Source: Rhodosorus marinus CCMP1338 (lineage: Eukaryota > Plantae > Rhodophyta). From it: a stretch of 64,000 nt of DNA. The stretch lies in NCBI GenBank assembly GCA_029953675.1, contig JAMWBK010000001.1:124001-188000 (forward strand), given 5' to 3'. Within the stretch, counting starts at the first letter, position 1; each line of letters begins with the position of its first letter. The translations under genes and the position numbers were made by a program. A model generated the notes under the pieces. It was not told the origin of the DNA, made no database searches, and saw nothing but the letters and a program-made list of their open reading frames with translations. Shown here in pieces: positions 7,670-57,000 of the stretch.

Positions 7670-9160
7670 CTACGCAGTGGGAGGGCATCTCTTCACAACC
7701 TCATTCTCCCCAGCAGGCGTGATTCGATAAAAGTAGTGCTCGATCCATCCCATCAGTCCGGATCGTTTCCTAATGTTCACGTTCATATCTTTGAGCAGAT
7801 CGTCGTGGTAAGACTGCATGTGTAACTGTATGCAGCTTGCTCTCATCGCGTTCATTGGCGTAATCGCCCTCCTCGACTGTTTCATATCCCAGATATCCTG
7901 CTCCATTTCTTTCCGTGACGGTCTTGGCATTGCATTTGTAAGCAACGCGGCAAGCCACTTGGCTTGAACCATGTGCGTCATGGGGTTTATGGCCGTGAAA
8001 GCGTTTGAGCCAATGAAGGCCATTCGGTCAATACCAGGAGGCAGAATGTTCTTGTACAACCAGATGCCGTCCTCTTCAACTTCGAGTCTATTCAGTACCT
8101 CATCATTAAACAGCCCAATCGTCTTATCCCAGCCCGTCGCCAGAACAATCAAGTCAGCCTCCACTTCCTCACCAGTTGAGAGAACGACAGTCTTCTCCTT
8201 GATTTCGTTGACTGCCGTCATCTTCAGATTGATCCTGCCGTTTCGAACATCAGCAAGATACTTGGCTGGCCCGTCGAAGAGGGAGGGATGAAGCACGTCG
8301 ACCTCTAATCTTGACTTGGGCCAGAGGTTTCTCGGCAATCTGTAGTTTGTTAGCATGAGCGCCTCGATGGTTCGAAAGTACAACCATCTGACCGGCGCGG
8401 CAAGCTTGTGAAGGTTCTTGTACATTGACGAGCTCGAGTAGAACGGAGGAAGCATCATTTGGAACAAGCGGGTGTACTTGACCGCGTGCATTGGCAGGAA
8501 CCCTACATGTGAAGTAGTAAACCAGTGCATACTGCGGACAAGCTGTACAGCGCTCTCTCCAACCTCGCTGGCAACCATAGACGCGTCGACTGCGCTCTTG
8601 CCCATCCCAACGATCACCGTCTTCTTTCCGGCGAACTCATCGGGCGATTTCCACTCAGACGAATGGATGATCTTCCCTTCAAACTTCTCCTGTCCGGCAA
8701 AATTAGGCCTGTGCGGCTTGCTAGAGAAGGTTCCGTTGCACATGACGAGATAATCAAATGTCTCGTCGTTCGAAACGTCTGTTTTCAAGTCCTTCACGGT
8801 CAAACGCCATATCCCGCCCTCAAGCTGTTTCATCTCCGTCACTAGCGTATTGAACCTGAAGCATTTCCGGATCTCATGCTTGTCAACAATTCTCTCCAAA
8901 TAATCGCAGACTTCATCCATCCTCAAAAATTTGCTCGCGTCCTCCAGGTGATCCTCATCCGCGTACTGGTACATATGCTTCGGGACCTGTACCGATGCGC
9001 CGTAGTAGTTATCTGACCAGAGGCCTCCGACTTTACTATTCTTCTCAAATACAACACAGTCGAATCCATGCTCACTCAGAACTCTTGTCGTCGCCACACC
9101 CGCAGTTCCTGCACCAATCACGGCAACTCGAAAAGCTCTCTTCGCTCCACCCACAGCCAT
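7670..9160 (-). CDS. Flavin-containing monooxygenase (class B FMO-like), copy 2, intronless, 496 aa
   Basis: Same motifs as copy 1 (GAGTAG, FEGKIIHSSEW, GMGKSA, LATGW); colinear with 1670-3160 at a constant 6000 bp offset. Confidence 0.92.
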   Translation of the reverse strand: MAVGGAKRAFRVAVIGAGTAGVATTRVLSEHGFDCVVFEKNSKVGGLWSDNYYGASVQVPKHMYQYADEDHLEDASKFLRMDEVCDYLERIVDKHEIRKCFRFNTLVTEMKQLEGGIWRLTVKDLKTDVSNDETFDYLVMCNGTFSSKPHRPNFAGQEKFEGKIIHSSEWKSPDEFAGKKTVIVGMGKSAVDASMVASEVGESAVQLVRSMHWFTTSHVGFLPMHAVKYTRLFQMMLPPFYSSSSMYKNLHKLAAPVRWLYFRTIEALMLTNYRLPRNLWPKSRLEVDVLHPSLFDGPAKYLADVRNGRINLKMTAVNEIKEKTVVLSTGEEVEADLIVLATGWDKTIGLFNDEVLNRLEVEEDGIWLYKNILPPGIDRMAFIGSNAFTAINPMTHMVQAKWLAALLTNAMPRPSRKEMEQDIWDMKQSRRAITPMNAMRASCIQLHMQSYHDDLLKDMNVNIRKRSGLMGWIEHYFYRITPAGENEVVKRCPPTA

Positions 9161-14334: not shown

Positions 14335-14448
14335 CTAACACAACAGTTCCTAATCTAAAGTACATATTCTACACAACGAAGTTTGACCTCTTAACACAAC
14401 AGGTTCCTAATCTAAAATACATATTCTACGCAACGAAGTTTGAATCTC
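14335..14448. repeat. ~57-bp tandem duplication spanning the stop codon of NhaC copy 2
   Basis: 14335-14390 and 14391-14448 share TAACACAACAG(G)TTCCTAATCTAAA.TACATATTCTAC.CAACGAAGTTTGA. Confidence 0.9.
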
Positions 14449-16840
14449 CTCCCGAAAGTCGCTTCGTTGCTGAGGCTGCGGGGGACACTTCATCGAAACT
14501 CACAATCTCTTCTACCCCGGATTTCTTCAACTCGGCGTCCAGCTCTTCGACCATATCACCATCCTCGGCGATCTCCATGTCGCTGCCTCCCTTCGCGGCC
14601 TGCTTCTTGCAGCTGAACCACCCCTTCCAGGTAGACCATTTCCAGAAGTTCGGCCTAAGGATATCTACAAATTCTTTATCGTACTGCTCGTCGTAGACAA
14701 AGAGCGACGTCGCCTTCTCCTCGTCCCCATCTTCTGAGCATTCTTCAGTAGCTTTACGTCTAGTGCACAACCTGCCCAGGAAGTTTGAAGCGATTGTCAT
14801 ACCATCCAGCCTCCGCTTGGGGTGATCTACTCTCACGCCGACAAAAATTATAAACACCATCGAGAAGGCGCAGCCGATGATCAATCCCCAATAGTTTTCG
14901 TAGGCGGAGTATCCCACAGGGAGGTACCCGAGGATAATTGAAACGCAGCCCACAGTCAGGGCATACGGCAGTTGCGTGATAGTGTGATGCATAACATCAC
15001 ACCGACTGGAAATAGACGACAGTATTGTTGTGTCCGAAATCGGGGTACAATGGTCCCCAAAGACGGCTCCGGACAGAACCGCGGAGATCGTCAAGATGAA
15101 GATCTCCGAGTCTTGTGAGGCATACCATGCGGTCGGCACAATGAGCGGGAACAGTATGCTCATCGTCCCCCAACTCGTGCCAGTGCAGAAGCTGATCACC
15201 GCGGCAATTATGAACGTCAAGGTCGGAAGAGCTCTGGGATCCAAACTATCGGAAAGTGCGCTCGCGAAGAAGATGTCAGCACCACTATCCGTGATCGCCG
15301 CTCCGATGGCCCAAGCCAAAATCAACACCAGCACGGGCGCAAAAATGCCTTTGATTCCGTCAATGAATGAGGATAAATTCTGCTCCATGGTCATTAAAGG
15401 GCGGCCAGGGCTTGCCTTGCAGCGAATCCAATATGCAATAGGGAAAATTAGCCTATCCTCCACGACATACTGTACGCGATACATGAACCAAGCGATCAGC
15501 GTGGTGGTAAACCCGCCGTACATCAACGATGCATATGAGTCTCCGTTGCCAAAAATGTTCTCCGCGGTCAATGGTAGTCCAAGCTCCTGAGCAGTCGTCC
15601 GGCCGGTAAGCAAGATAGAGAGCAAAACCAAGAAAATCACAATCACAATCGGAATCACACCGTTCCACCACTTCAGCGGGGTTCCCTCCTCCGGCATCAT
15701 TGACGATTGAGACTCGTCATCCAAAACCTTTGCATCATCACGGACGAGCTTGTGCTCATCGAGAGCTCTCCTCTCGGCGACAAGCATTGGCCCGAACTCT
15801 CGCTTCGCCACGATCATGAAAAACTGGAAAAACAACATAATGATCGGATAGAATCGCGACGGGATGGTCTCCAGGAACACTAAGTACGCGTTCTCGCTGA
15901 TCCCGACAAGATCTTCACCCTGCGCGATAAGCAAATCAATCTGTGCCTGAATAAGCCCGACCTCGAACCCGATCCAAGATGATATTGGAGCAATCGAAGC
16001 AACCGGTGCTGTGGTCGCGTCCACCAGGAACGCCAGCTTCTCACGGCTCACCCACAGTGCATCGGAAACAAAGCGCATAGTGTTCCCCAGAATCAGAGTG
16101 TTCGCGTAGTCATCAAAGAAGATGACAAAACCGAGTAGGAAAATGACGAGCTGAACGGTCATTCTGGTCTTTGCAAACTTGCGGCAAACCTCTGCGATTC
16201 CAAAGCTTCCTCCAGACTTGGATACGCAGGCAATAAGTCCACTGAGGAACCACGTGAAGAGGATGACAAACGCGTGGTCAACGTCTCCAAGCGATTCCGG
16301 CATATACGTATCCAATACTCGGAGGAAAGCCTGGAAGGGATCATACTTTGAAACAACAAAGGCTGCGACGAAGGTGCCGATATACAGAGCATAGAGCACC
16401 TCACGAGTCAACCCCGCAACGAGAATAACCATGATTGGAGAGAGGAGAGTTACCCCCCCTGGAACCAAGAAAACCTCTGTCTGTGAGGACTCAGCCGTTG
16501 CAAAATCTGAAGTAAGGGAATTCTCGACAAAGATCTCCTGGTTACTACGCTCATCTATCAGGATGTCGCTCAAAGAATTCGTTTGTACAAGGAGCCCTTC
16601 TTCAGTAAACAGATCAATCTCACTCTCCCCAAGTATGGTACCTTTCCAAATCACCCTAGAGTACAGCTTCGTCCCCAGGTCGTAAGTCGTTTCATTTGTG
16701 TAGCCCAGCGTCCAGGCCACCGTAAACGATACGCCTTCCACGTAGATCGGCCTCGGCTCTTGGATGTTGATAAGAGGCGGGTTCCCATAGGCAATCCCAG
16801 CCAATACCAGCAGCATGCAAGCAACGATGGTCGTCCTCAT
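14426..16840 (-). CDS. NhaC-family transporter, copy 2, intronless, 804 aa
   Basis: Paralogue of 10834-13278 with the same FDDY, SREKLA and GDHCTPISDTT motifs; signal-peptide-like N-terminus MRTTIVACMLLVLAGIAYG. Confidence 0.85.
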   Translation of the reverse strand: MRTTIVACMLLVLAGIAYGNPPLINIQEPRPIYVEGVSFTVAWTLGYTNETTYDLGTKLYSRVIWKGTILGESEIDLFTEEGLLVQTNSLSDILIDERSNQEIFVENSLTSDFATAESSQTEVFLVPGGVTLLSPIMVILVAGLTREVLYALYIGTFVAAFVVSKYDPFQAFLRVLDTYMPESLGDVDHAFVILFTWFLSGLIACVSKSGGSFGIAEVCRKFAKTRMTVQLVIFLLGFVIFFDDYANTLILGNTMRFVSDALWVSREKLAFLVDATTAPVASIAPISSWIGFEVGLIQAQIDLLIAQGEDLVGISENAYLVFLETIPSRFYPIIMLFFQFFMIVAKREFGPMLVAERRALDEHKLVRDDAKVLDDESQSSMMPEEGTPLKWWNGVIPIVIVIFLVLLSILLTGRTTAQELGLPLTAENIFGNGDSYASLMYGGFTTTLIAWFMYRVQYVVEDRLIFPIAYWIRCKASPGRPLMTMEQNLSSFIDGIKGIFAPVLVLILAWAIGAAITDSGADIFFASALSDSLDPRALPTLTFIIAAVISFCTGTSWGTMSILFPLIVPTAWYASQDSEIFILTISAVLSGAVFGDHCTPISDTTILSSISSRCDVMHHTITQLPYALTVGCVSIILGYLPVGYSAYENYWGLIIGCAFSMVFIIFVGVRVDHPKRRLDGMTIASNFLGRLCTRRKATEECSEDGDEEKATSLFVYDEQYDKEFVDILRPNFWKWSTWKGWFSCKKQAAKGGSDMEIAEDGDMVEELDAELKKSGVEEIVSFDEVSPAASATKRLSGGDSNFVA

Positions 16841-21763: not shown

Positions 21764-22229
21764 GAAGGTATTCTGTCCGCAAGTCTTGTTGGTAGTGGGG
21801 CACGTTCAGTCCTCTCGGGGAGAAAGGGCCAAGTTCCTTTAGAAAAACCTCTCTCTTGCTTGCGTCGATGTGAACAGCCTAGGCTTTCATTTCCGACTCT
21901 TGGAGGATGCGGCCTCGTTGTTTTAGTCCTTGCCTTGCGAGAAGTACAGTGAAGAGGTCACCGCAAGGTTCAGATCTGCTTGGACATTGATCTGAACCAG
22001 CCAGAAGGTATTCTGTCCGCAAGTCTTGTTGGTAGTGGGGCACGTTCAGTCCTCTCGGGGAGAAAGGGCCAAGTTCCTTTAGAAAAACCTCTCTCTTGCT
22101 TGCGTCGATGTGAACAGCCTAGGCTTTCATTTCTGACTCTTGGAGGATGCGGCCTCGTTGTTTTAGTCCTTGCTTCGCGAGAAGTACAGTGAAGAGGTCA
22201 CCGCAAGGTTCAGATCTGCTTGGACATTG
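21764..22229. repeat. Near-identical 226-bp tandem duplication with a 14-bp junction insert
   Basis: 21764-21989 is repeated at 22004-22229 (240 bp period) with only a few substitutions; spacer ATCTGAACCAGCCA. Confidence 0.95.
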
Positions 22230-22417: not shown

Positions 22418-22944
22418 GAACTACCACAAACTTACTTTCTTCCCGCCTCTGGGCTCCCGTCTGTCATGTTACATGCACAGGAAGGGCTGAACCACTGAAA
22501 GGCTCTACCTGATCGCCGGGATGCTGAACAGTGCACACCAGTACTCCAATCACCCCCTTCTGTTTCTTGATGGCGCATGGATCTCTCTACTTCAAATGCA
22601 CTTCATCCAGAACGACGAGAACTTGTGTGTCATGTTCAATGTGAACGATCGACCAGCGCGGATGTTCCATCCGTCAGCGTGTGGGGCTCTTCCGAGACCA
22701 AGGCATTGCACGAAACCCAATCCGACGATTGAGATATTCCAGCATGCTCTGAAGAGAGCCAAGGGTAACCCCGCCTTTCTCGGAGTCTAGTAGCCCGGAA
22801 TGGTGTCCGCCAGGAAAGAACGTTAGGAGCACTCCTCCATAACGGAAGGCTGCGCGACAGCGTCACAAAGTCACAATTCAAGGACAACAGTCTGAGCGTC
22901 TCTTCTAGTCTATATTATATGTCCCGTTCGCCGTTTGTGTCCGC

Positions 22945-23470
22945 AAAACTGCAATTCCTCCAGAAGCATTGATTGTCAGATTCATTGATCCTTTTCCCGG
23001 ATGAACCCTGCCTTGAGATAGCAAAATGAGGCCACGCACATCTGATGGAGACGCCCCGAGACCCTAGTTCGAGTAACGAAGTCAATTAATCTCGCCTCAA
23101 TCGGGAGAGACTGTCTTTTCAAACCATCTTGCTCGCTGTGGGGAAGCCGTTTGCGGCTGGTGTCTCTACAACTGCAATTGCTGCAGATGCGTTGATTGTC
23201 AGATTCATGGATCCATTTCCCGGATGAACCCTGCCTCATGAGATAGAGAAAGGAGGCCACGAACATCTTACTGAGACGCCCCGAACTCTGCTTCGAGTAA
23301 CGAAGTCAACAGATCTCATCTCAATCTGGAAAGTCTAGAGACTGCCGCTTCAAACCATCGTGCTCCTTTACTGAGCCCATTCGCCGTCGTCGTCCTCACA
23401 ACTGCAATTGCTGCAGACGCGTTGGTTGTCCGATCCATCGATCCTTTTCCCGGGCGAACCCTGCTTTAAG
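22945..23470. repeat. Diverged ~225-bp tandem repeat, 2 full copies plus 1 partial
   Basis: Anchor AACTGCAATT..TTG.TTGTC.GAT.CAT.GATCC.TTTCCCGG..GAACCCTGC at 22947, 23170 and 23400. Confidence 0.88.
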
Positions 23471-27126: not shown

Positions 27127-27154
27127 CACAAACAAACACGCAAACATACACACG

Positions 27155-27219
<65 letters not shown>
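27127..27219. repeat. (CA)n microsatellite with degenerate 5' flank
   Basis: Perfect CA run of about 65 bp preceded by CACAAACAAACACGCAAACATACACACGCATA. Confidence 0.98.
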
Positions 27220-27223
<4 letters not shown>

Positions 27224-33950: not shown

Positions 33951-34181
33951 ATTGGAAACGGTGTCTTAAACAGACTTGATATAATACATACTATTTTAGG
34001 GGGGGCGGGGGGGTAGGGGGGGTTTGGGGGAGAACGGGTGATGTTTTAAGTAGGAGGAGAGAGATAAAGAGCTGAGCTTGCACGCGTTTGGTGGTGGTCG
34101 TCGTCGTAGGGAATTGCGGTGGGTGCGTTTTTCCTTTTTCGAGGAGAGATGGGAGAGGGGGAGAGTGTGGTGGAATCCAGT

Positions 34182-35876
34182 ATGGGGTTCGTAGTTTCCT
34201 GGGGGACTTGTCGTCGGGGGTATGGGGCGAGGTGTGTTCTTCAAGGTGCAAAAGTTGACCAGAAAAAGGTTCGATGGGATTCGAGTCTTACTGCGAAGGA
34301 GCCTGTGAAGAGGAGACCTGGGAGGCCAAGAAAAGTGGATTCAAATGATAGTATCCCTACGAGCAAGTTGGGGCGGACGAACGGGGATGATGTTGAGGTT
34401 TTAATGCCTTATCCGGACGTCATGCCGGTTGATATGGAGGAAAATGACGAGACTGAGGGCGAGGGAGAGACCACGGAGGGTGAGGTTGAAGAGGCACCAG
34501 CCGAAGTGGAGGACATAGACTTGGTCGAGCGCGAGAGCGCAGAAGATACTACGGAGGAGGGTAATATTACCGAAGGAAAAGGGAAAAAGAAACGCGAACA
34601 ATCGGATAACACAGTACGATGGTATCTGGAGTTGGTTGGGAAAGGACGGCTTCTGAGGGCTGAGGAGGAGGTAAGTGTTTGGACACCCATATCCCCCAAA
34701 ATGTGTTGGTCCTTTCGCCTTTATCCGGGCAAGTCGAGTCATTCTCGAGAGGGAGACAGTTTTTAGAGAGAAACTGATCAGGGGTTGGAATTCTTAGTCT
34801 GACTTATAGCTGCCATGGGTATTTTATCTTTCGCTTTTCTGAAGGTGGACCTGTCCAGGAGGATTGCTCAGCTATTGCAGTGGGAGAGACAGAGGCAGCA
34901 AATGTATGAGGAAATGGGAAGGGACCCGACAGTTGAGGAGTGGGCAAAGGCTCTGGAGTTGGACATAAAGGACTTCCAGAGTCAGTTGTTTCAGTGTAGG
35001 AAGGCCAAGGAGAAAATGATAACCAGTAACCTGAGGCTTGTAGTGTCAATTGCCAAGCGCTACGCGAATAGGGGCCTCCCACTTTCTGACATGATACAAG
35101 AAGGTACACTTGGATTGGTTCGAGCCGCAGAGAAGTTCGACGGGAGCAGAGGCTACAAGTTTAGTACTTATGCCACATGGTGGGTGAAGCAAGCGGTTGC
35201 CCGTGCAATTGCTGATCACTCGAGGAACATCCGCCTACCAGTTCACTTGTACGATACCATTGCGGCTGTCCGCCGTGCAACTCGGTGCTTAACAGAATCC
35301 TTGGGTAGAAGTCCGTCAGAGGAGGAAATTGCGGCCTACTTGGGATTGTCTATTTCAAAGCTACGAAGCACCCGTATCCATATGATGCCGACAATACCGC
35401 TGGAGAGCCCCCTGAAGGAGGTTGACGATGGTAAGGCCAAACGCACAAACAGGGTTGGTTGGCGTCGTTCAGGAGCTGAACTGTGTTCCTATTCCTATGT
35501 TAGCAGGCATGTGTCTTGGTGATGTGCTTCAATCGACGGAAGTAAGTCCCGAAGACCGAGTGGAGAGAGCTCTGCTCAGAGAGGATTTGGAACACGTGAT
35601 TAATTCTTTGAGTCCTAGGGAACGAGACGTCGTTCGAATGAGGTAACTATCACAATCCAAACGCGCAAATTGTCAACAGATCGTCTGACGGGGCAGCTCT
35701 GCATGCACTGATCCCACAGGTATGGTCTTGACGACGGCCGAATGAAGACACTGGACGAAATTGGTCGTATGTTCTGCGTCTCCAAGGAACGGGTCCGACA
35801 AATAGAGACGAAAGCGATTAGAAAACTGCGACACCCGTACCGCAGTGCGGTTTTGCGCGACTTTTTACAACACTAA
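34182..35876 (+). CDS. Nuclear-encoded plastid RNA polymerase sigma-70 factor, 4 exons
   Basis: Transit peptide [13 protein letters not shown]..; region 1.2 [22 protein letters not shown]; region 2 [47 protein letters not shown]; region 3 IRLPVHL; region 4 [41 protein letters not shown]. Introns 34671-34844, 35431-35506 and ~35643-35720. Confidence 0.93.
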
Positions 35877-37087
35877 CAAGCTTATTTGACGAAACAAGGC
35901 TCCACGCACATCCTATGTGGCGGCCACGGCGGAGCGGATCGATGGAGATGTCTGGCACAAGTTTCTGCTGGGTGGAGTACTGGGAAACAAAACCGTGACA
36001 CTCCGTGAAGATTTTTTGGTAGAACTTGGAACAAGTTAGCCGGCTGTGTGGATATTTCAAGTCCGGATCTAGTTTGGACAACGTGCCCCGAGAGAAGACG
36101 TAGCGGCCTCGAGTCGAGAAGCTGCTGTAGTAGTAGGTCGGCGGAAAACCACGCAGTAGGACGAAGTCACAATGGCTGCAGTCATTATGCTCGGGTTGGC
36201 GGTGTTGCTAGGACATCGCTGGCCGGTTTGTATCGCTAACAGCGTTGTATAAGTGGCACGACAAGAACAGAGACCGATAGCCGCTCACTGGGGGAAAGCT
36301 TAGGTAGGTTATACAGGGGTTGCCCATTGTTATAGCGTCAGGACTGTGTATATGACACAGGTGAATATTTTTCTATGAGGAAAAGAAAAGAAAAGAAAGC
36401 ATGCAGTAAATCTTGAATGATAAACAGTCTGTTGAACCTATCCGGCACTTTCAGTTGAGTTTCAGCTGGCGCTTTCCGCTCACCTTTGGCAGTAGTTGAC
36501 GAATCTAGCGCGGATCAAGGAGGGGATCTAGTAGAGAGTCGGAGGTTGCTGGGGACATATGAAGCTCCCCTAGTGCGTCCAAGAGTTCCGATCGCCGGTG
36601 GGATGCTTTTCATGCTTTTCATGACCTGGAGCGTTCTCCAGAGCGAAAATGCCAGGCAAGAAGTTCCATTAGATCATCGGAGCGTAGCTTGCGGTTAGGC
36701 CCTCACCAAACAACCAGGTAAGTGAAAGTCATTTCTGCCCCCGGTCGTCAACGCCGTCGCCCTCGGATACGGGACCTGAATCTGCCCGGGAGAGCGCCTC
36801 GGAAGGCTGAGCATGACATTTTGATAAGCAAGCCGGTGTCCTGAAGAGCCCTCTCTCGACGTCAACCTGATCGGTCTGTTGGACGGAAGGACGATTGGGG
36901 TTTGAAAAGAAAATAAAGGTACGAAAAATGCGATAAACACGTCGGGTGAATTTACCCGTTGATGTTTAGATGCCTTTCCTATCAACATCGTTGCTTCAAA
37001 ACCAAGAAAAGCTAACAAGATTGACAAGGGAGTCCTATGTACTACCAGCAACAATTGTCTGTTTGAACCACGACAAGACAGCCATTC

Positions 37088-39946: not shown

Positions 39947-42161
39947 CTATCTTAGAAGAACTGCGCTCCGTGGAAGATCCTCCATTTTGAGTCTCAAAGT
40001 CTTCCTTGCCGCAGCTGCTGCAGAGGAGTCAGATCCTGTTTCTGCGGCACATGTGCCAGTGCATTTTCCATCTCGAGGCTTTCCATTCGAGGTGGATACC
40101 TGACATGTGGGACACGGAATTCATCCTCAGCAACACAGAGAGTGAACAAAGAAGACGCAATCGCCACGATTCGGAGCAGAAGAGGACTGCGACGACATAC
40201 CTTAGCAACTTTGCTGCTGAGGTTGAACATCAGCCTATCCCTGGAGCTGTCGAGGAAAACAGGTCCCCTGGGCGCAGGCCGCATTTCAAACCGCTTCACA
40301 TCAGTCAGGTCAGGAAGCATACTGCTGGTGCCCCGGGGAGCCCCAATAGCGACTCTGTAGGCCTCAAAGTGTTGGAGGCCTTGGTGTGTATGCCTGTAAG
40401 TGACAAAACGAGTTATCCAGTAAGGCGAAAGCACACAGTTTCTCCATAGTGGACCGGGAATGATGAAGCATACCAGATTGCTCTTGCCGTGATATCATCG
40501 AGCATCTTAGGCATCTGCCTATCTTGCTGTTCCCTTTGCGGTTCCGCGACTAGTAGAAACCTCTCTGTGGCTGCTTCCCACGATAGGTCCCTCAGCTCCT
40601 GCGGAAGGAGAGGAGCAGGTTCTTCTGCAAGTGCCTTCGTTAAGCAGTTGGAAAATTCCGCTGCATTTCTGTAGACTAGGCAATTCCGGAACTGACGGAA
40701 AAAAGCGTTGGACGGATGATCTGCGCATATGACAAACTTTCCCATAGCAAGCGCCTCTGCGGTAGTAGTGGCAACCACATCGCTCATGCTAGGATTAATA
40801 AAAACCTTGTAGCGATGGAAATCGACGTCCCCGTGGTCTTTGGCACCACGGAAATGCAGGCGTAAATGTCGTCGTTCCGCTTCATTCTCCACTTCCTGCA
40901 GATCTGGGCCTCCGCCAAATACATCAACGTCCACGTTCCGTCCACAGGACTGCATCAGGTTGAGCAGCTCACTGTAGCCTTTACCCCACAACACTTTCCC
41001 AAGAAAATAGCAACCCTTGTCGAAGCCTGGGAACGAATCGTCGTCCAGTGGGCTCGACTGCGCCGGCAAGTTCTCTCGGCTGGTTTCAGATGAGGTCATA
41101 CAACTTACAAATGTTGCTTTGACGGATTCCAGTTCACTAAACCTGAGACGGAACGAAAATATGGACCACTTTGAGCTCTTCTTCCCAAGCCTAAAGGAGA
41201 AAATTTTCGAAGTCATTTACCTCTCGGACACCATTCGACCGACTTCTAGAAACTTTGGAGACACGCCATGAACGAAACAGGTGATGTTTTCGCTGTTCTT
41301 GAACTCTTGCACTGCGTCACTGAGCTTAACCACCGTGTGCACACCCGCAGCTCTAACAACCCAATCATTAAATACTTTGAGCATGTTGGACTTGAACTGA
41401 CCCTCTTCCCGTCGGACGTATTCAAGGTAGTTTGTATGGACTATGCCCACCACGTGGTTGAACTTGTCACACCACCTCCGCCCCACATGATACCAGTTGA
41501 GGTGTTCAGGCTCTTCGAGAACCGCTACCTGCGCTTCCCCGTCTGGAACGTATTCTGTAATGTCCCCGAACGCAAAGATGCTTCCTTTCTCACGCTCATA
41601 GTAGCCGGGGTAGAAACGAAGCTTGAAATCCGACTCGAACCCGACGCGATTCTTCAACCACTTTCGCACGTATGCTTCCTGTTCTTTTGGCGACTCAAAA
41701 ACTTTTCCATCTGGATGGACTTCCATCTGGTCACTGGGAGATAACCAAGGTACCAAGAGGGTCACCTGCTTCTTCAATCGCGACAGGTACGCCGCCCGCA
41801 GAAGCGGATTTACGGCGGTCCCGGTCATCCACGGCAAGGATGCAGTCGTTACTATAGCAAGCTTTACGTCTTCGTCCTGGAGCGAGAGCCCAGAATCTGC
41901 CATCAGAGGTCCAGTCCCAACGTCAATGTCCACGAAAGACTCCGGTGGAGAGATCTCACTAAGGTGCATTCTTTGACGCTGCTCCTTCATCCACATCATC
42001 ACCGGTTCAACTCCGTTCTTGCTCCAAAAGGTCTCGAATGCCTTACCCGGATTCTCTGCTTCCTGAACTCCCCGCACAATTCCCACCACCATCTTGTGAA
42101 GAGCCTCAAAAAGCTTCACACCAGGCGGTTCCATCCTATACACGGCATCCTGCACTTCCAT
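39947..42161 (-). CDS. DGD1: Digalactosyldiacylglycerol synthase (plant-type, GT4), multi-exon
   Basis: [147 protein letters not shown]. Intron 40473-40394 joins to [19 protein letters not shown]. The start and last exon are uncertain. Confidence 0.88.
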
Positions 42162-44869
42162 ATTTCCACCAAACCGCACAAACCAAAACAACCGACCCCC
42201 CCCCCCCAAAAAAAGAACTAATTCCCTCCCTCGCTCTTCCGTTTCAAGAAAACTACCGCATTTTCTTCACACACTCCTTCCATTCACCCTCTTGTCAGTC
42301 ACCCAACAACTCGCAATTTCAAAGGTAAGCCGTAGAACCATAGCTCCACCCGTCTTTCCTCCCGCAGACCTTCCCTCACGGTCCCACCTCCTCAAAACTC
42401 ATCAACCCCCGTATTCCCTCATCCCTCATCCCCCATAGCAACCCGAACCCATATCCAACCCACAACCCAACCCGCAACCCAACCCTCATCCCAGCTCATA
42501 AGCCAACCACTATCAAACCCAAAGTCCCCCCCCACACCCCACACACCATTTTCCAAATTATCAAACGACGCCTTTCTCCCACACGTATTTACCAGGGAAC
42601 ATGATACCCCCGAAAAATAATATCTAAAAACAAGGGTCATAGATCAAAGGACGGATTGATTAAAAAACAACAAAAAAGGCAGATAATTTGAAAAAACTCG
42701 GATTAAAAGAAATGAAACCCGCAGCAGAGGCCCTCAATAAATATTCTACAATCATATCTCGTCCCTCTTTACGGTGTGTAGAGTTTTACATTATTCGTAA
42801 CCCCACCCCCTCTCCGATTTAGGTTACTACTAACGATGTTGACTGAACATTGATTCGGGGACAAATTAAAGACCGAACTTGGGGTTTTTAGGGAAAGAGG
42901 ATCAGCAAATGAAAATCGATTCTAGTTACGGTCTTTCCCCAGTCATGGAGGTGGGAGGAGAGAAGCTGGCCGCGTCAAGCCAAAGCAGCACGGGAGTTGA
43001 GTGCTGCTTCTGAAAGCCTTTCACGTCTCCGTTGACTCTCAAGAAGCGTCCAGAACAACGATTTGTTTGATATCTCAGTCACCCAAAGCCCGTAGCCGAA
43101 AGCATTTCGTCACCGAACCAAGTCCTTGTAGCAGTTTCAGAGCAGTCCGCAATTTGTCCCTGTTCGTGTGCCTTCCACGATTCTAAGACCGGATACTGAT
43201 TGAATAAATATCAGTCGTTGTTTGTTTGATACATGAAAAATTGGAAATCTTTCCCTTGCCTGCACGGGGCATGTGGGGAAGATTTCCAAGGCAGACCGTT
43301 CGAATTTTCAAGGGGAAAAAAACTTCTGCTTATCGCTTTTAACTTTCATAAGGGGGGGGTATTTTGATATAGATTCATGACGATCATGCGTCCGTTGAAA
43401 ACTATCCACACCCAGCAACAGCTTGCGAAGCTGGAAAACAAATGCATTTGGCCAAGTAAAAACCTTGAGAATGTAACAGGCCTAACTCACAGTCAAATAG
43501 TCTATACGCCAATGCACAAAACTCGCAAAAGGGTCATCATATACACCGGTGCGTTCCGAGAAAAAGAAAACCCCCCTTTGTTTTCTTTATTTTTTCAAAG
43601 CTCAGGAAGGGAAAACAACCCGACACTCGTCGTTTAATCGTAGCTGATACGAAACAAACTAGGAATGGGCAATCTCGACTTCGTTATCTCAACGTGTTCT
43701 TTCTAGACTGCGAATAAGCAAACAGCAAGAATTCGACAACGGCTTTTCCACTCAAAAAAATTCCAGAAACAGACTATTCTTGAAATTGACTTATATCAAT
43801 CATTACAAAGCGCACAGAAGTAATCTCCTTGAAAATTCGTGTCAAGGGAATGCATGGGGATTTCTTCCATTGGATGCTTTGCATTGGCATGTCCTCCTAC
43901 TAGAGTACACGAATCCAGGCCCAAGATCATCTTCATGAAAGGCAAGCTCCATTATTTTGATAATAAAAATAGGGTCCGTTTGGATACCCTTAAAATATTT
44001 CATCATTACTGATATTTGCCGGAACTTTTTGTCCAATGATGGATTGGGAGGATGCTCAAAGTACCGAACACATGGAGAAGCCCCGCCTGTCAACTGTCCG
44101 AAGAGGCAGAAATCGACGGTCCCTTCATAAAAGTTTCAAAAAATGACGTATCTTTCGCAGCCTTACTTAAGGAGCGATAGATTGGATATAATGCATTAAA
44201 CATCATAATTCAGATCTCCCTATAGGATATGGTCTAAATTTAGAAAATTAGATCGAAATCCGCATATGAAATAGGAACTAAGTGCATCTTGCCGTGGTAC
44301 TTGGGGTTTTTGTTTTCAGGTTAAATTTTCGAGGAAATCCTGGTCAAGGTTACCCCTCTGGGGGTCCACGAACGGGCGAAATCTATCCGGGAATGGTATT
44401 CGCTTTGGAGAATGGATCTCATTTTAGGGCCTTTATTTTGGGCCATTTGGGAAGCTCTTCCGAATCTCTTGAAGAACAGATTCCGCTCATGAATTCAGAG
44501 TCTGGTCTACCATCGAAGGGCAGTGCTCTTAGGCCAGAAGGAGGTTGTGGGGGTGGTGATGGAGGGGATGCAAGGAGTGCAGGCAGGCGTTCAGGTGTGA
44601 CGACAGATCAATAAGCAGCTCAGTCATGAGAGGCGCGAAATCCATTGCAGCCCTCCAATACAAGATCAGCTGTGTTGTTCGGGGTTACACTCCGGTTGAT
44701 CTAAGGATAAACAGATGCAGTTGAGGCTAAGCTACCTCAATCTCGAGCTATGAGCAACTAAAGAGGTCGCAGAGGTTTACTCTATACGGGCTCTACGTAA
44801 CGTGGACTCTGCTCAGGACACCCTTAGGTATCCGAAAATCGTGCATGACTAATTACTCGCTCATGAGCA

Positions 44870-47307: not shown

Positions 47308-49157
47308 ATGACCTCACATACAAACGCCACGAGTGGAGGTACCGGGAGGAGCATAGTAAAGATTTTGGGCGGTGGTAGGGAGGTCGGACGCAGCTGTGTC
47401 TTCCTTCGCGTCCAGGATAAAAGCATTCTTCTAGATTGTGGTCTGCACCCTGGCAAGCGAAACCTTGCCCGCCTGCCTCAGCTCGACTTTTTGCGAGAGA
47501 ACCCGCCTGACGCAGTCGTGATCACTCACTATCACATAGACCATATCGGTGGTCTTCCATATTTATCAACAGCAACCGGGTTTGACGGACCCGTTTACAT
47601 GACAAAGCCAACGAAAGATCTCGGCTTGCTCGTCATTTCCGATTTTCTTCGGCTGAATGGGTCAGAGGTGCCATTTTCAGAGGAAGATATGACCAGGTGC
47701 CTCAATGCAGCAACGATCGTGGAGACGGAACGAACCATCCAAGTCTCAGCTGGTCTAGATCTCCGTTTTCTCTACGCGGGACATGCACTGGGCGCCGTGA
47801 TGGTGCAGGTTATTGCACACGGGTATGTTGTCTTATACACGGGAGACATAACAACATTTCCAGAGCGGTTGATCGACACACTGTGCGTATCTGGGGCTGC
47901 TCCGCAGCCTGACTTGCTCATCATGGAGTCAACCTACGCTGGTAGCATACGAGAATATTCTAGGAGGACAAACGAGCGGCTACTGCTGAAGGAGGTCTCA
48001 AATACGCTGGAGGCAGGTGGGAAGGTCCTCATACCCGCCTTTGCAGTAGGGCGTACATTGGAGATCGTTGCTATCCTCATTTCCTACAGCCGTCGCTGTA
48101 ACCTGAGCTTCCCAATCCACGTATCTTCTCCGCTCGCCCGTGCCGCGATGAAGGCCATGCTCGAACAGGACTCATCCTGGTTTGCCGATGGTGTCCGGGA
48201 ACACGTGCTCCATGACCTTGTAGAACTGCAAGAACGCATTCCTCTTTCCCAGCGATCGCGAGTGGATGATAACGAATACCAGATGGTCCTGATCGCGGCC
48301 CCGGCCATGCTCAATGCGGGTATGTCCACTGCACCTGAAAGCGCAAGCGCAACTCTTCACTTTCCAAAGTCCTTTGAATGAGAAGCCCAAGGGCGCGAGC
48401 TGCTGAAATTTTTTTTGGTTTTGTCTTAGGCTTCTCTCGTGAAGTGTTCCAGAAATGGCGTTCGGACGAACGAAATTTGGTGGCGTTGCCTGGGTTTGGG
48501 TATTCGGATGGTAGCAAAGGAACGGAATCTGGGTACAGGTGTCAAATTCGCAACTATTCACTGAGTGCACATGCTGATGCGATGGGACTATTCCAACTTG
48601 TGAGGAAACTACGCCCGAAGAAAGTGGTTCTTGTTCACGGAGAAGACAGACCCATAGAGAGCCTTGAGAAGCTGCTGAAGTCTGACCTTGGGATTGGGGT
48701 CAAGTCGCCGCGCACCGGTGAAAAGGTATCTTTGTCTCGTTTCGAGAATCATGTGCGCTGCCCACATAGTCTGTGGGAGTTGAACCACAACCGCAAAGAG
48801 TCGAGTGAGCTGGCCGAAAGGGCGCTGCTGGCGTTCCAGAAGGGAAATGGATGTCTACGCCGACAAGGGGAGTTTTGGCGGTGTGAAACGAAGTTTCGGT
48901 CCTGGGAGTTTGCCAGGAAGGCCATCATTTCGGGTCTTCTTCGAATAAAGAAATCAGGGCACATGTTTGGGATCAACGAGAGTGCCATAACGGAAGCTGT
49001 CGCAAAATTCGAAGAGGACAGTTCAAGGTCGGGCAGCATTCGATCAGTGATTTTCAAGGGTGTTGGGGACGGTCGCCGAGTTGTGTTCCTCTGTTCGCAG
49101 ACAGATGTTTCTCTGGCGCGTTCTCTCATCAACGAAATAGTGTCAGTGGACAGATGA
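47308..49157 (+). CDS. INTS11: Integrator complex subunit 11 / CPSF73-II-like beta-CASP metallo-beta-lactamase nuclease, 2 exons
   Basis: GGGREVGRSC, LLDCGLHPG, THYHIDHIGGLPY, YAGHALGA, YTGD, ESTY, GGKVLIPAFAVGR; phase-1 intron 48320-48429 (GTATGT..TTAG); SLSAHADAMGLFQL..KVVLVHGE resembles INTS11 (SAHADAKG) rather than CPSF73 (SAHTD). Confidence 0.8.
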
Positions 49158-51730: not shown

Positions 51731-52810
51731 CCCTTTCCTTTAGCTGCTTCACGTATAAAACTTGGAGTACTGGAGTTTCTAGAATGGGCATACTTTGCTA
51801 TCCACCTTAAATGGAATCGTAGAAACGACCAATTCTTTAAGCTTTGGACGCAGATTGTCCTCAGCTTCCAGTGTATTGGCCTCTCATAGAGGGGATTCAC
51901 GTCGTCGGAAGTTGCATGTGGCTGTCTGCATCCCACTACATGCATAGGTGACTCCCTTCACGATGACGGCCAATACATTGCAAGTTTAGGATAACCGGCA
52001 TCCACAGTGTTTTGACGTGATCCTGGAGGGGACCGCCTTGCATCTTTACGTACGCGAAACGAGGCGAAAGCCGGACATTGGATACACCACTCCCGAGAGG
52101 GTTCAAGTAGCATATGAGTGAGGGTGAGTGAGTGTGGTAGTGCTAGCGAGAATTAGTTTTGTGAAAGATGGCGTTCTGTGACTCTCCGCGCTTGTAGTAG
52201 CTAACATCACCGGCGCTGAGGCATGTCAGTGGCTTACCAGCCGTGCAAATGCATTTGTAAGAGTACACAGCATGCTCTTGGAAGCATCCTTACAGACAAC
52301 AGCGTCGACGACTTGTCACGAGAACGCCTTGGGTTTGACCAAGTTCACAAGAACATCGTGTTTTTGATCCCGAGTGGAGTTCCTCTGCGATGTCCCATAC
52401 AGTTTCCTCAGTTAGGACTTTGGACAGTCGCGTTTCGAGTTCCAGTGTTTCAAGAAAGAGAGACTGTGATGCCGAGGCTTCTTGTTCTAATACTTGTTGT
52501 TCCGAGTCCCCTTGTTGCTTTATCAAACTGTTAATGTGTGTTTTTCACAGATTGTAATTAGTGACGGTTTTCAAACATATTGGCCAAACCTCAGTTACAA
52601 ACTTTTCCTCTTGAGCGGGTTCATCAGGGCATTCCCTTGGGCTGCGTAACGGCTATAAACGCTGTTGCCGACGGCGATTACGACGGGGCAGGTGGAGACG
52701 ATGTGAGAGAGGAAGTTGGGGAACGGGAGCTGGCTTTTGATCTTTTTGATTGCATGTGATGTGATTAGATGAATCGTTTGAATGCATTGATATGAATGAG
52801 GGAAACGAGA

Positions 52811-52897
52811 GCCCAACTGACCTCTGCTGGTGCAGGGTGCGGCCTTCAGAGCCGTAGCAGCCGAGAGGCTGAGCGGTTCGATTCCGCCTGGCGGGCG
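52811..52897 (+). tRNA. trnU: tRNA-Sec (selenocysteine, anticodon UCA), eukaryotic 9/4 fold
   Basis: 87 nt. 6-bp D stem CTCTGC/GCAGGG with TGGT loop; 6-bp anticodon stem TGCGGC/GCCGTA with loop CT-TCA-GA; long variable arm CAGCC-GAGA-GGCTG; 4-bp T stem GCGG/CCGC with TTCGATT loop; 9-position acceptor GCCCAACTG/CTGGCGGGC; discriminator G. Gap-free colinearity with the vertebrate tRNA-Sec as I recall it. Confidence 0.93.
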
Positions 52898-52910
52898 TCG
52901 GCCAGAAGGC

Positions 52911-52920
52911 CTTTTGCTTT
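52911..52920 (+). terminator. Probable RNA polymerase III terminator of tRNA-Sec
   Basis: TTTT run (52912-52915) followed by GCTTT, 14 nt after the discriminator base. Confidence 0.5.
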
Positions 52921-54026
52921 GTTGGTTAAGGCAGGTGAAAGGCTTCAACAAAGCTTTTGAAAGCAGAAGGGGAAGATATGCCTGTACGTTTCGAAACTCC
53001 TTGCTCGGGGGTGAGGAGTTTATTCTTTCTTAAAAAATCAGCACTGGAATCTTGCATCTTGCTTTGTGTTGTACCGAATTCAGCGACAACCGATCTGCAA
53101 CTTTTTCCGCCCAGTGAAAGCCTATCCTATTCCCAAGGTCGACCGGTCTTTCGGGCAACGTCCAAAGAAGCGTTGATGGCCTTTCGCACAACCTAGTTTC
53201 CAGTGCAAACAGCCCAAACGACAGAGACAACCGAGCAGCAACCTGCATCTCCCTTCTCAATGGTCTAGACACAGTAGACATTCTTCGATGCAAGGCTCAA
53301 CGCTTCTGTCGAATCTGTGACCCACGGTGGAGGTGGAATTGAAAATTGCAAGAGGGACGCGGGATTCAAAAATAGCATGCTCTATTTCATTCAGCCGTCT
53401 TCTAAGGATCACACTCAGTCCATCTGGAAACGTGAACAGTCTCAGTCAAAAGCCCCTCACTGTGCACGTTTTGTTCACTTTCATTCCTTGGAAGACGATT
53501 TTGAACTAATTTGTGTTTCCCCACAAGGCGCGCGAAGATGACATACACTCTGGTGGAGAAAGCAGTGAATCCAAGTTGGGAAGAGGAACGAAACCAGTGA
53601 ACCAGCTCCTCGTTGAAAACATTGGTGCTTCGTATTAGAAAAGATTGATGTTTCCATGTTGCTGGGCAAAGGGAGGCTTTTATTTATCCGGTAGATTGTA
53701 CGTTTACGAGCATACTGGGTGAGTGTATAGTTTGAAGGTGGGAAGGCCTAGTTTTCAAGTTTTTTGGCATTCCCGAGAGCTTGTTTGAAAACGTGAGAAG
53801 CTCCATATTGGCGCGACTGAGTTCCAAAGAACGAGATCAGCGCTGTTGCGGAATGGGTTCCAGTCCAAGACGGGTGTTCGTTGGGGAGATGACAAGATTT
53901 TGACACTGTTTTGGGTATTCCTGGATGTGTTGGGTTGTCCGTGAGCAACTGCGGGCACTTAATCGTGTGTGGGCATCGGGAGAGTGAGGGACTTGGTTTG
54001 TTGTTTGTGTTTCAAAAGGCATCGAG

Positions 54027-57000
54027 ATGGGATCTTGGGGTGGTCCTGATGCTATGGCTACTCTGGCTGCGAGCATTGAAGGGAGCCAATCGCCAGACAG
54101 CAATGTGAGACGGCAAGCAGAAAGTTTCATGGAACAAAACGAGAAGAAGCCAGGGTTCGCGACGGCAGTGCTTCAGCTTGTGGCTGAGGCATCCGCTGCT
54201 CCGCATGTGAGGTTGGGAGGCTCGATCTTCTTCAAGAACTGGGCGAAGAGATCATGGGAGGATGCAGATCCAAACGAAAGGGAGCAGATCAAGCGATCTG
54301 TAGTTGCTGTCATGCTGTCCAGCCCTGATCCGGTGCGAAAACAGCTGGCAGAGGTTCTGGCAATCGCTCTCGAGTCCGAAACCAGAGATACCTGGCCGGA
54401 TCTGCTGCCTGACCTTGGTCGGAAGCTATTGGAGTGTGGGGCGATGACTCCGATGCCTCTGGGAACCTTAGAAGGAATACTGGGCGCTCTAGATTCAATA
54501 TTCGAGCCGTACAGGCACAAGTATCGGAGTGACGAGCTCTTCCTGGAGATAAAGCACGCTCTGCACGCGGTTCAGGAACCTGTGACGGCGGTTTTCGATG
54601 CGATTTCGTCTTCTGTCCTAGCCGGGACTTTCGCGCAGAACACCGCAGACAGCGTGATAGAGATCGCCAGACTTTGTGCAAGCATCTTCTACTCCCTCAA
54701 CTGGCAGGATATTCCGGGATTCTTCGAAGACCACATGTCCAAATGGATGGATCCTTTCCTAAAGATCCTCGAGCTTCATAATCCAGCCCTAGAGCAGAAT
54801 ATGGATGAGCAGAGCACACTGGACCATCTCCGAGCGCAGATCATCGAGAATATCAACTTGTACCAGAGCAAGTATGAGGAAGAGTTCCAGTCCTATTTGG
54901 AGCGAAGCACTAGCGCGGTTTTCACACTTCTGCAGAGAGGAGCAGCGACAAGATACGATTCCGTTGCCACAACAGGAATTAAGTTCCTCACAACTATATC
55001 TCGATCCTCGAAGTACGCCCTCTTCGCCGCCCCAAACGTGCTGAACATGGTAAGCCCAACATATGTTCCGAAACCCGCCTGGCGAGAATTTTCTGCACGT
55101 GAAAAGACGGGCACAACCCCTTCCCACCCCGCTTGGTCGATTTGTGGCATCCATTTGCCTAATGCGTAGTGCCCTCTGCGAATGACTAGGTATGTGAGAA
55201 CATAATCCTTCCCAACATGAGGATGAGGGACGAGGATGTAGAGCTCTTTGAAGACAACCCTGTTGAGTACATGCGTCTGGACGTGGAAGGATCTGATGCG
55301 GAGACTCGTCGGCATGGAGCAGTCGAACTGATTCGTGGGTTGAACACCCACTACGAAGGGCAGGTGACGGATATTTTTTCAAAGTACGTGTCGGTACTGC
55401 TGGCTGAGTACGGGCAGGATCCGATGAACAAGTGGAAGACCAAGGACGCAGCAATCTATTTGGTGACCGCGCTTGGATGGAAAACGGGTACTGCGGCAGG
55501 TGGTGCGACAACAACGTCTGGTTTGGTGAGCGTTGTAGATTTCTTTACGGCTCATATACTTCCGGAGATTCTGTCCGCGGCGGAGGCACCGGCGAATGTC
55601 ACTAGTCCGGTACTGCGGGGGAATGCGCTCAAGTACACGGTGACGTTCAGAAATCAACTGCCCAGTGCACAATACCAGATCACCCTGGACGCCTGCTGCA
55701 AGTTGATGACGTCGAATGTGGTGGTGATCCACTCATACGCGGCTTTGGTCGTGGAGAAACTATTCGGAATGACAGAGAAGATCCCCATGCAACAGGGGAT
55801 CGTTCGTACCCCTAAAGTCCCCCAGAAACTTGTTGTGGAGATGCTGCCCAAGCTACTACCTCCTCTATTCCAGCTTATTGCGCCTGGAGCTGCCGAGAAC
55901 GAGTATGCGATGAAATGCACAGCGAGAACGATCGTTCGCGCGGACAAAGAATTTCACGTACACGCCGAGACGGCCCTGAGACAGCTCTGCAGCCTCATAG
56001 AGGCTGTCAGTCGCAATCCAGGAAACCCGAGCTTCAACCACTACCTCTTCGAGGCCGTCGCGGCGGTGATCAACACCGCTCCGGAGAAGATCGAGCTCTA
56101 TCAAACCCTCCTGGTGCCCATGCTGCAGGAGCTCCTCAGCAAGGAAGTCCTCGAGTTTGCGCCGTACGCACTGCAGATTCTCGCGAAGATTATGGCCCTA
56201 TATTCAGCAAGACAGATGCAGCTGCCCGACTTTTTCCGCCAACTCGCCAAAACCCTCCTTGCCCCGCCTCTCTGGGACCGTTCCGGGTTTGTTCCGGGGA
56301 TGGTCAAATTTCTGCAGGGATACATCCGCCTCGATAGCGAGTATATTTTGGCGAGCAATACGCTCGACCCGATCCTTGGCGTGTTCCAGAAGCTGATCGC
56401 GAGCAAGGCCAATGATCACCACGGTATGGCGCTAGTGCGGACGATTATTGAGACTTACGAACTCAACACGATGCGAAATTATAACGTGAACATCCTGCGA
56501 ATACTGATGACGCGACTGCAGACTGCTCGGACCAATAAGTTTGTCGAGCTCTTGATCATCTTCCTCGCTGCTTTCACAATACGGTATGGCCCGGATACTC
56601 TGGCTGAAGGCATGGACGAGCTCCAGCAGCACTTGCTAGCCATGGTGCTCACGCAGGTGTGGGCCAAGGCGTGTCTCACAACGCCCGCCACAGGCCCTAG
56701 CAGACGACTTCTCTCTGTTGCACTTACAACGATTCTATGCACGGAGAGGTTCACAACTGAACCTTATGCCGCTGTTTGGGCAGATGTACTGACTGCTAAC
56801 ATTGCTCTGCTAGAAGGTGAACACTATGCCTTGAGTCCAAGAATAAGCCGTGGACGGGTTTCAATTCTAGGATTAGCAATTGACTTGGAGCACGTTATCT
56901 TGTTTGCTATTCTCAGGCATCGAGGTTGACGCTGTGGATGAAGACCGCGATCCATTGTTGGAAGAAGACGCTGCCGCGCAGACCGGGTACAACGTTGCTT

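Follow-up and report, generated by a model that had tools for sequence, protein, structure and literature searches.

The 64-kb stretch of DNA from the red alga Rhodosorus marinus strain CCMP1338 analyzed here (hereafter "the window") contains, at positions 52811-52897 of the forward strand, a nuclear gene for the selenocysteine (Sec) tRNA, tRNA[Ser]Sec, which most likely is functional, despite two unusual acceptor mismatches and a G at position 37. ARAGORN reported a single tRNA across the window, tRNA-SeC(tca) at 52812-52897 (+), while the Rfam search with cmscan assigned 52811-52896 (+) to the family RF01852 (tRNA-Sec; score 69.1 bits, the gathering score of the family being 47; E = 5e-12; alignment over the full model, 1-91/91), the only non-coding RNA family above its gathering score in the window. 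A full-length covariance-model match of this significance, which is also the sole non-coding RNA match in the window, rules out a chance similarity. Both programs agree with a first-pass annotation of this DNA, which had recognized a eukaryote-type tRNA-Sec with a UCA anticodon, a 6-bp D stem, a long variable arm, the 9/4 fold and a downstream T run, and which had rightly guessed a red alga as the source: the window belongs to contig JAMWBK010000001.1 of the assembly GCA_029953675.1, which is that of R. marinus (PMC10250338), a member of the class Stylonematophyceae.

The gene comprises 87 nt including the discriminator base G73 (52897), with the CCA end not encoded. Its 13-bp helix has the 9/4 arrangement: the acceptor stem of nine positions and the T stem of 4 bp line up with those of the RF01852 model. 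The 5' strand of the acceptor stem, GCCCAACUG (52811-52819), pairs with CUGGCGGGC (52888-52896), and a linker of 2 nt leads to a D arm of the eukaryotic type (52822-52837), with a 6-bp stem CUCUGC/GCAGGG composed of standard pairs throughout and the 4-nt loop UGGU. The anticodon arm (52838-52856) consists of the 6-bp stem UGCGGC/GCCGUA and the loop CUUCAGA (52844-52850), in which UCA occupies 52846-52848 and G37 position 52849. The long variable arm CAGCC-GAGA-GGCUG (52858-52871; 5 bp and a 4-nt loop) and the T arm (52873-52887; 4-bp stem GCGG/CCGC, loop UUCGAUU) complete the cloverleaf. The D, anticodon, variable and T stems, noted in the first-pass annotation as different from the vertebrate sequence yet paired, are indeed fully paired, with changes on both sides of the helices.

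tRNA promoters recognized by RNA polymerase III (Pol III) contain an internal B box, and the segment GGTTCGATTCC (52875-52885, +) matches it in sequence and presumably serves as such. A TTTT run at 52912-52915 (+), 15 nt past the 3' end and accompanied by TTT at 52918-52920, is a probable Pol III terminator. The upstream region (52740-52810, +) is A+T-rich and carries repeated TGAATG/GATGAAT motifs; GATATGAA, centred near -20 upstream of the gene, is a possible upstream promoter element. Behind the tRNA, its 3' trailer TCGGCCAGAAGGCC (52898-52915) can fold into a small GGCC/GGCC hairpin right before the TTTT.

A strong argument for function comes from another gene of the same genome. The first-pass annotation had proposed a genome check for SPS2, and this gene was found, with an in-frame TGA at the Sec position. 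Porphyridium possesses a Sec-containing SPS2 (PMC6627142 supplement), and a search with the Porphyridium protein as a query retrieved R. marinus proteins that form one cluster (P0132 and further members from MMETSP), among them the genome-encoded KAJ8907890.1 (locus tag NDN08_007993). The locus lies outside the window, at 2280584-2290283 of JAMWBK010000002.1 (L002). Its frame begins with the ATG at L002 position 4001 and reads MEEELPEVQEPRASSFLPGSIGLPTEFKLTGYSRLKG, the in-frame TGA (4112-4114), GCKIPQ, a GT...AG intron and ADLTRLLDRSGISQNRKMMDTSV... The environment of the TGA (...SIGLPTEFKLTGYSRLKG-TGA-GCKIPQ, intron, ADLTRLL...) is conserved on both flanks, and the frame can be aligned position by position with Porphyridium ...SIGLSAGFMLTNFSKLKG-U-ACKLPQEELDNLL (SKLKG-U in Porphyridium), the TGA standing opposite the U, exactly at the catalytic Sec codon. 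The public SPS2 model KAJ8907890.1 is in error: it is spliced around the Sec codon, with MEEELPE joined straight to IPQADL, and the resulting protein has lost the active-site loop SRLKG-U-GCK; the affected part, L002 4001-4290, corresponds to about 2284584-2284873 of JAMWBK010000002.1. Other selenoprotein genes in the annotation of GCA_029953675.1 may be mis-modelled likewise.

The reading of this gene is settled by transcripts of another strain of Rhodosorus (contigs L003-L005 of JGI sample 3300017118). The spliced contig L003 reads in one frame MEEELPEVQEPRASSFLPGSIGLPAEFKLTGYSRLKG*GCKIPQADLTRLLDRSG...MMDTSIV; the mature mRNA therefore has the UGA in frame and has lost the predicted intron, and the stretch upstream of the UGA is conserved coding sequence. 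The SPS2 proteins of the two strains differ, and fall into the same cluster at an identity of at least 90%. TGA terminates 11 of the 38 long open reading frames (ORFs) in the window, so it is an ordinary stop codon here and has not been reassigned.

The 3' untranslated region (UTR) of SPS2 contains a candidate resembling the Sec insertion sequence (SECIS). It begins 138 nt past the stop codon, extends from the AUGA at L002 5839 to the GA at 5882, and has the layout AUGA-CGCGUGGCUUCGC-AAA-CCCGGGAGGG-GGAAGCCAGAGCU-GA, as in a type-2 SECIS with an apical mini-stem. With search criteria drawn up once the candidate was already in view, its internal helix (-16.7 kcal/mol, AAA unpaired) was not equalled in energy by any of 200 dinucleotide shuffles of the UTR, and candidates of any kind appeared in 4 of the 200. 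The element is kept in L003, where its interior differs solely by an apical loop changed from GGGA to GUGA and by the unpaired base before the GA. The SPS2 TGA, the SECIS-like element and the mRNA of the second strain favour a working rather than a decaying Sec system; the first-pass annotation had left these two options side by side. Together, these data show that in R. marinus the product of one expressed gene or more needs Sec insertion, which argues strongly for a working Sec system and hence for a working tRNA-Sec. We infer that the UGA of SPS2 is decoded by the tRNA encoded at 52811-52897. As a separate observation, the genomic sequence (L002 5701-5830) has, after the stop codon and ahead of the SECIS-like element, about 110 nt (GTGAGT...AG) that the transcript of the second strain (L003 1514-1545) lacks, which suggests either a 3'UTR intron or an indel between the strains.

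The sequence and the Rfam alignment give the nine acceptor pairs as G-C, C-G, C-G, C-G, A.C, A.G, C-G, U.U and G-C, six of them standard, with pairs 5, 6 and 8 flagged by Rfam as non-standard. The mismatches A5.C (52815/52892; A5.C68) and A6.G (52816/52891; A5a.G67b, pair 6 being 5a:67b in the standard numbering) had been pointed out in the first-pass annotation and are present in the sequence, while the U8.U pair (52818/52889) had been overlooked. To judge how unusual these features are, we used the Secmarker seed alignments (supplementary text of PMC5330540), of which 74 representative eukaryotic sequences served for the acceptor pairs, 139 eukaryotic sequences for the anticodon loop, and 54 for the folding energies. 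Pair 8 is mismatched in 74/74 seeds (U.U in 68) and left unpaired in the consensus structure, so the U.U pair is canonical. Pair 6 shows a purine-purine mismatch in 14/74 seeds (A.G in 6, G.A in 4, A.A in 2, G.G in 2); one of the seeds, AFPP01031090, has a 5' strand GCCCAACUG identical to that of R. marinus, together with an A.G at pair 6. Pair 5, however, is mismatched in only 2/74. Hence of the two acceptor mismatches presented as unusual in the first-pass annotation, the one at pair 6 has precedents, and, as judged from the sequence, it is A5.C68 and its tandem combination with pair 6 that constitute the truly peculiar element of the R. marinus tRNA-Sec.

An alternative, register-shifted acceptor stem, in which A5, A6 and C68 are bulged to yield C-G, U.G and G.U pairs, was considered and rejected, as one base at the junction of the acceptor and T stems would then stay unpaired, and as the insect-type seeds have exactly the standard register.

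The loop CUUCAGA, with G37, was found in 3 of the 139 eukaryotic seeds, all from the whole-genome shotgun project ACUQ (Amphimedon queenslandica), against 136 with CUUCAAA. It is present in 15/15 archaeal seeds and in none of approximately 235 bacterial ones; a metagenome scan with a pattern allowing A or G at position 37 detected at least 120 bacterial selC genes, all with A37 among the matches listed. According to the authors of Secmarker (PMC5330540), the positions invariant in 553 eukaryotic tRNA-Sec sequences, besides the anticodon and G73, are G18, G19, U33, U55, C61 and C66. All six are present in R. marinus (UGGU in the D loop; U33; the T loop UUCGAUU with CCGC; G7-C66, which is the pair G9-C78), whereas A37, the typical site of N6-isopentenyladenosine (i6A), is replaced by the G at 52849. 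A37 does not belong to the list of invariant positions, so G37 is no bar to membership among the eukaryotic tRNA-Sec. The peculiarity of G37 was therefore overstated in the first-pass annotation, the base being rare in eukaryotes but present in all archaeal seeds and in Amphimedon; the comparison made there with vertebrates only had exaggerated the oddity of this tRNA.

In terms of stability, the R. marinus molecule is close to the edge of the range spanned by the curated, presumably functional eukaryotic seeds, yet inside it. The energy of its cloverleaf is -39.1 kcal/mol, with a gap of 4.4 kcal/mol to the minimum free energy (MFE) structure (a larger gap was obtained for 2/54 seeds); the acceptor stem contributes -7.9 kcal/mol (equally weak or weaker in 6/54), and the total of three non-standard pairs is the same count as in 6/54 seeds. 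The nearest seeds are identical to the R. marinus tRNA-Sec at 63-66 of 86 positions.

The R. marinus tRNA shares with the eukaryotic tRNA[Ser]Sec (RF01852; human TRNAU1) the UCA anticodon, the length of 87 nt, the 9/4 fold, the 6-bp D stem with the UGGU loop, the 5-bp variable stem, G73, the U.U at pair 8, the B-box T loop and the absence of an encoded CCA. It differs by A5.C68 and A5a.G67b where the others have G-C and G.U, and by G37 in place of A37. The closest seeds by identity (64-66/86) are AABU01002766 and AFPP01031090, which, from their accession prefixes, we take to be insect sequences of the Drosophila type. These sequences (GCCCCACUG...CUGGGGGGC) exhibit the A.G at pair 6 as in R. 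marinus, followed by the same C-G, U.U and G-C below it, but position 5 is paired (C-G or A-U) and position 37 is A. Given the phylogenetic distance, the resemblance of the acceptor stems is convergent. The sponge Amphimedon queenslandica (ACUQ01004972/3) is the sole other eukaryote among the seeds with CUUCAGA in an otherwise standard tRNA-Sec; its acceptor stem, unlike that of R. marinus, is fully paired save for the canonical pair 8, and, since the two organisms are unrelated, G37 has independent origins in them. The archaeal tRNA-Sec (Methanococcales, Methanopyrus) also combines the 9/4 fold with G37, which shows that such a tRNA can function in the PSTK/SepSecS pathway, but its D stem and variable stem are each 7 bp long. 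The architecture of the R. marinus tRNA is eukaryotic, and G37 is thus most simply explained as a secondary A-to-G change and not as an archaeal retention.

tRNAs with G37 generally carry 1-methylguanosine (m1G37, introduced by Trm5) in archaea and eukaryotes, and by analogy G37 of the R. marinus tRNA-Sec probably does so as well. G37 removes the A36-A37-A38 isopentenylation motif, so the tRNA is expected to be devoid of the i6A37 present in the animal and bacterial tRNA-Sec. A related situation has been engineered in mouse, where an A37G tRNA[Ser]Sec that had lost i6A supported the synthesis of housekeeping selenoproteins (Txnrd1, Gpx4) but not of the stress-related ones (PMC5699536). The base and the loss of i6A37 are the same; however, the mouse variant was expressed beside the wild type, while R. 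marinus carries G37 naturally. As to the acceptor stem, the tandem mismatch A5.C68/A5a.G67b appears to be tolerated within the 13-bp acceptor-T helix, where A5.C68 may form a wobble-like A+.C pair beside an A.G of the kind tolerated by the insect tRNA-Sec.

The determinants expected for the enzymes of the pathway are present: G73 and the long variable arm for seryl-tRNA synthetase, the D arm with 6 bp and a 4-nt loop for PSTK, and the 13-bp acceptor-T helix with G73 for SecS. Both serylation and the reactions that subsequently lead to Sec depend on G73, an essential base (PMC5330540). By analogy with the characterized eukaryotic systems, the gene would be transcribed by Pol III from its internal B box up to the downstream T run; the transcript would be processed at its ends, receive the CCA and be charged with serine by seryl-tRNA synthetase, guided by G73 and the long variable arm. 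The serine would then be phosphorylated by PSTK, which is predicted to recognize the 6-bp D stem and the 4-nt loop, and converted to selenocysteine by SecS with selenophosphate supplied by SPS2, whereupon eEFSec and SBP2 would deliver the tRNA to UGA codons of SECIS-bearing mRNAs.

In the lineage of R. marinus a tRNA-Sec is expected. The complete Sec machinery is reported from some red algae outside Bangiophyceae and Florideophyceae, with total loss in Porphyra, Pyropia and Chondrus (PMC6627142), and transcript fragments of eEFSec, SBP2 and SecS are known from Chroodactylon ornatum, which belongs to the same class as R. marinus (PMC6627142 supplement). The selenoproteomes of red algae are very small (PMC7539508), and C. 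merolae reportedly retains the tRNA-Sec with few if any selenoproteins (PMC13578239). The statement of the first-pass annotation that Sec use is absent from Cyanidioschyzon is consequently correct insofar as no selenoproteins were found, but it has to be amended, as the tRNA-Sec and a part of the machinery are reported to be retained. Rhodosorus is not treated in PMC6627142, PMC7539508 or PMC13578239, and our literature search returned no paper tying this genus to selenoproteins. The present data place Sec use in Stylonematophyceae with genomic evidence; earlier reports of the machinery in this class were limited to transcriptome fragments.

Several observations weigh against a functional tRNA-Sec. 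SecS and eEFSec of R. marinus were not located among the best 120 matches to each query, and no search for PSTK or SBP2 was made. Mismatches at both pairs 5 and 6 co-occur in 0/74 eukaryotic seeds, a set that contains no tRNA-Sec from another red alga (the supplement of Liang et al. contains no red-algal tRNA-Sec sequences), and the search for tRNA-Sec genes covered the 64-kb window. The Rfam SECIS models gave no match in the SPS2 3'UTR at E <= 10, and the criteria applied to the SECIS-like candidate were, as said, chosen after the fact. Finally, the MFE structure predicted by RNAfold for the bare tRNA sequence is not a cloverleaf. The last point was rejected as evidence against function, because the cloverleaf is likewise not the MFE structure in 38/54 curated seeds, 2 of which exhibit larger energy gaps than R. 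marinus.

Among the matches to SecS and eEFSec (the latter searched with the Chroodactylon protein), ten unnamed ones as well as P0250 and P0267 were followed up, and none could be traced to R. marinus. The eEFSec match "Rmarinus@m.4235" is from Rhodelphis marinus and was rejected as a Rhodosorus protein; for the best eEFSec match, P0250 (MMETSP/JGI sample 3300016877), no claim is made for R. marinus. The SecS match P0114, whose transcript numbering had suggested Rhodosorus, turned out to be from the ciliate Fabrea, the other unnamed SecS matches are from unrelated protists, and the top match P0001 comes from another JGI sample and is not credited to R. marinus.

It could be argued that 52811-52897 is a surplus copy that has begun to degenerate into a pseudogene, while a canonical tRNA-Sec located elsewhere in the genome does the work. 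Such copies do exist: the authors of Secmarker listed 154 candidates from 80 genomes with destabilizing mutations relative to the best copy of the same genome (PMC5330540), and the tandem mismatch unmatched among the seeds, a G37 that is rare in eukaryotes (3/139 seeds) and an Rfam score of 69 bits, comfortable yet not high, would all fit this picture. Pseudogene copies, however, typically lack G73 and have much lower scores (PMC5330540), whereas here G73, the anticodon, all the other stems and the invariant positions are intact, the remaining four stems being fully paired with two-sided changes relative to vertebrates, and the overall stability is inside the range of the curated seeds. Moreover, tRNA-Sec is a single-copy gene in most organisms (PMC5330540; PMC13578239). 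We therefore regard a degenerating copy as unlikely. A different view is that R. marinus has started to lose its whole Sec system, the tRNA being a relic and the mismatches and G37 its first lesions. The repeated loss of Sec among red algae, their very small selenoproteomes and the SecS and eEFSec proteins missing from our matches could be cited in its favour, but a non-detection that covers the best 120 matches is not evidence of absence, and the SPS2 gene speaks for the opposite: it needs decoding of UGA as Sec for its conserved N-terminal active-site loop, it is transcribed and correctly spliced, and two strains with non-identical SPS2 proteins have both conserved the TGA, its flanking coding sequence and the SECIS-like element. 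Early decay is thus very improbable, and a functional tRNA-Sec remains our preferred explanation.

Errors of assembly or polishing as the source of the unusual bases, or a contaminant origin of the locus, seem to us hardly credible, although the assembly was built from Nanopore reads (with NextDenovo) and exact-product look-ups of the neighbouring and overlapping ORFs retrieved no independent assembly covering the locus. Nanopore errors are mostly indels, while three separate substitutions with the length unchanged would be required here, and the contigs were polished three times by Pilon with Illumina reads. The contig that carries the tRNA-Sec is 3.8 Mb long, and its genes on either side of the tRNA within the window are eukaryotic (Cse1/CAS exportin, a VPS11-like RING protein, an MBL/beta-CASP nuclease, FMOs and members of the Na+/H+ antiporter family), which excludes contamination; the eukaryote-specific 6-bp D stem points in the same direction.

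Next to that of the sponge, the R. marinus tRNA-Sec is the second from a eukaryote in which G37 occurs naturally, and among the sequences compared it is the first with neighbouring mismatches at acceptor pairs 5 and 5a. It thereby adds data on which positions of tRNA-Sec are truly constrained, and leaves the current understanding of the Sec pathway unchanged. We speculate, while considering this a doubtful possibility, that R. marinus, and perhaps Stylonematophyceae, decodes UGA as Sec with a naturally i6A37-less tRNA (G37, probably m1G37) bearing the tandem A.C/A.G mismatch, which either reflects a lineage-specific recognition co-evolved with SecS, PSTK or eEFSec, or is relieved by editing of C68 to U, restoring an A-U pair. 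If true, this would provide a natural experiment on the role of i6A37 and of the acceptor-helix geometry in eukaryotic Sec insertion.

Analysis of the genomic neighborhood revealed that the tRNA-Sec gene is located in a 2.3-kb stretch without long ORFs. The ORFs that overlie it, at 52595-52951 (-), 52796-52960 (+) and 52830-53033 (+), were regarded as spurious in the first-pass annotation; this is reasonable, as they have no Pfam matches, and exact-product look-ups found no called-gene record for the ORFs overlapping or adjoining the tRNA. The gene of the Cse1/CAS exportin (54027-56929, +) shares the strand of the tRNA-Sec and starts 1.1 kb downstream of it; the exportin gene is represented by two ORFs (380 and 570 aa) separated by a gap of ~47 nt (55170-55216), which is consistent with one short intron. 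The metallo-beta-lactamase (MBL)/beta-CASP nuclease (47308-49157, +), of the CPSF73 or Integrator-11 type, is likewise split into two ORFs, in different frames and with an ATGA overlap at 48378-48381, probably owing to a short intron or a frameshift.

Two genes of flavin-containing monooxygenases (FMO), at 1670-3160 (-) and 7670-9160 (-), lie 6 kb apart and encode proteins of 496 aa each that are 91% identical; the pair is a recent tandem duplication. An FMO gene of the window consists of a single exon. It is adjoined by another tandem pair, encoding the paralogous membrane proteins at 10834-13278 (-) and 14426-16840 (-), of 814 and 804 aa, which belong to the Na_H_antiporter family (PF03553) and possess a signal-like N-terminus. 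A region without long ORFs contains tandem repeats at 21764-22229 (240 nt x 1.9, 98% identity) and 22923-23464 (223 nt x 2.4, 79% identity), and a (CA)n microsatellite is found at 27127-27220. The local extremes of the GC skew, calculated in 2-kb segments, are +0.26 at 34001-36000 and -0.24 at 42001-44000.

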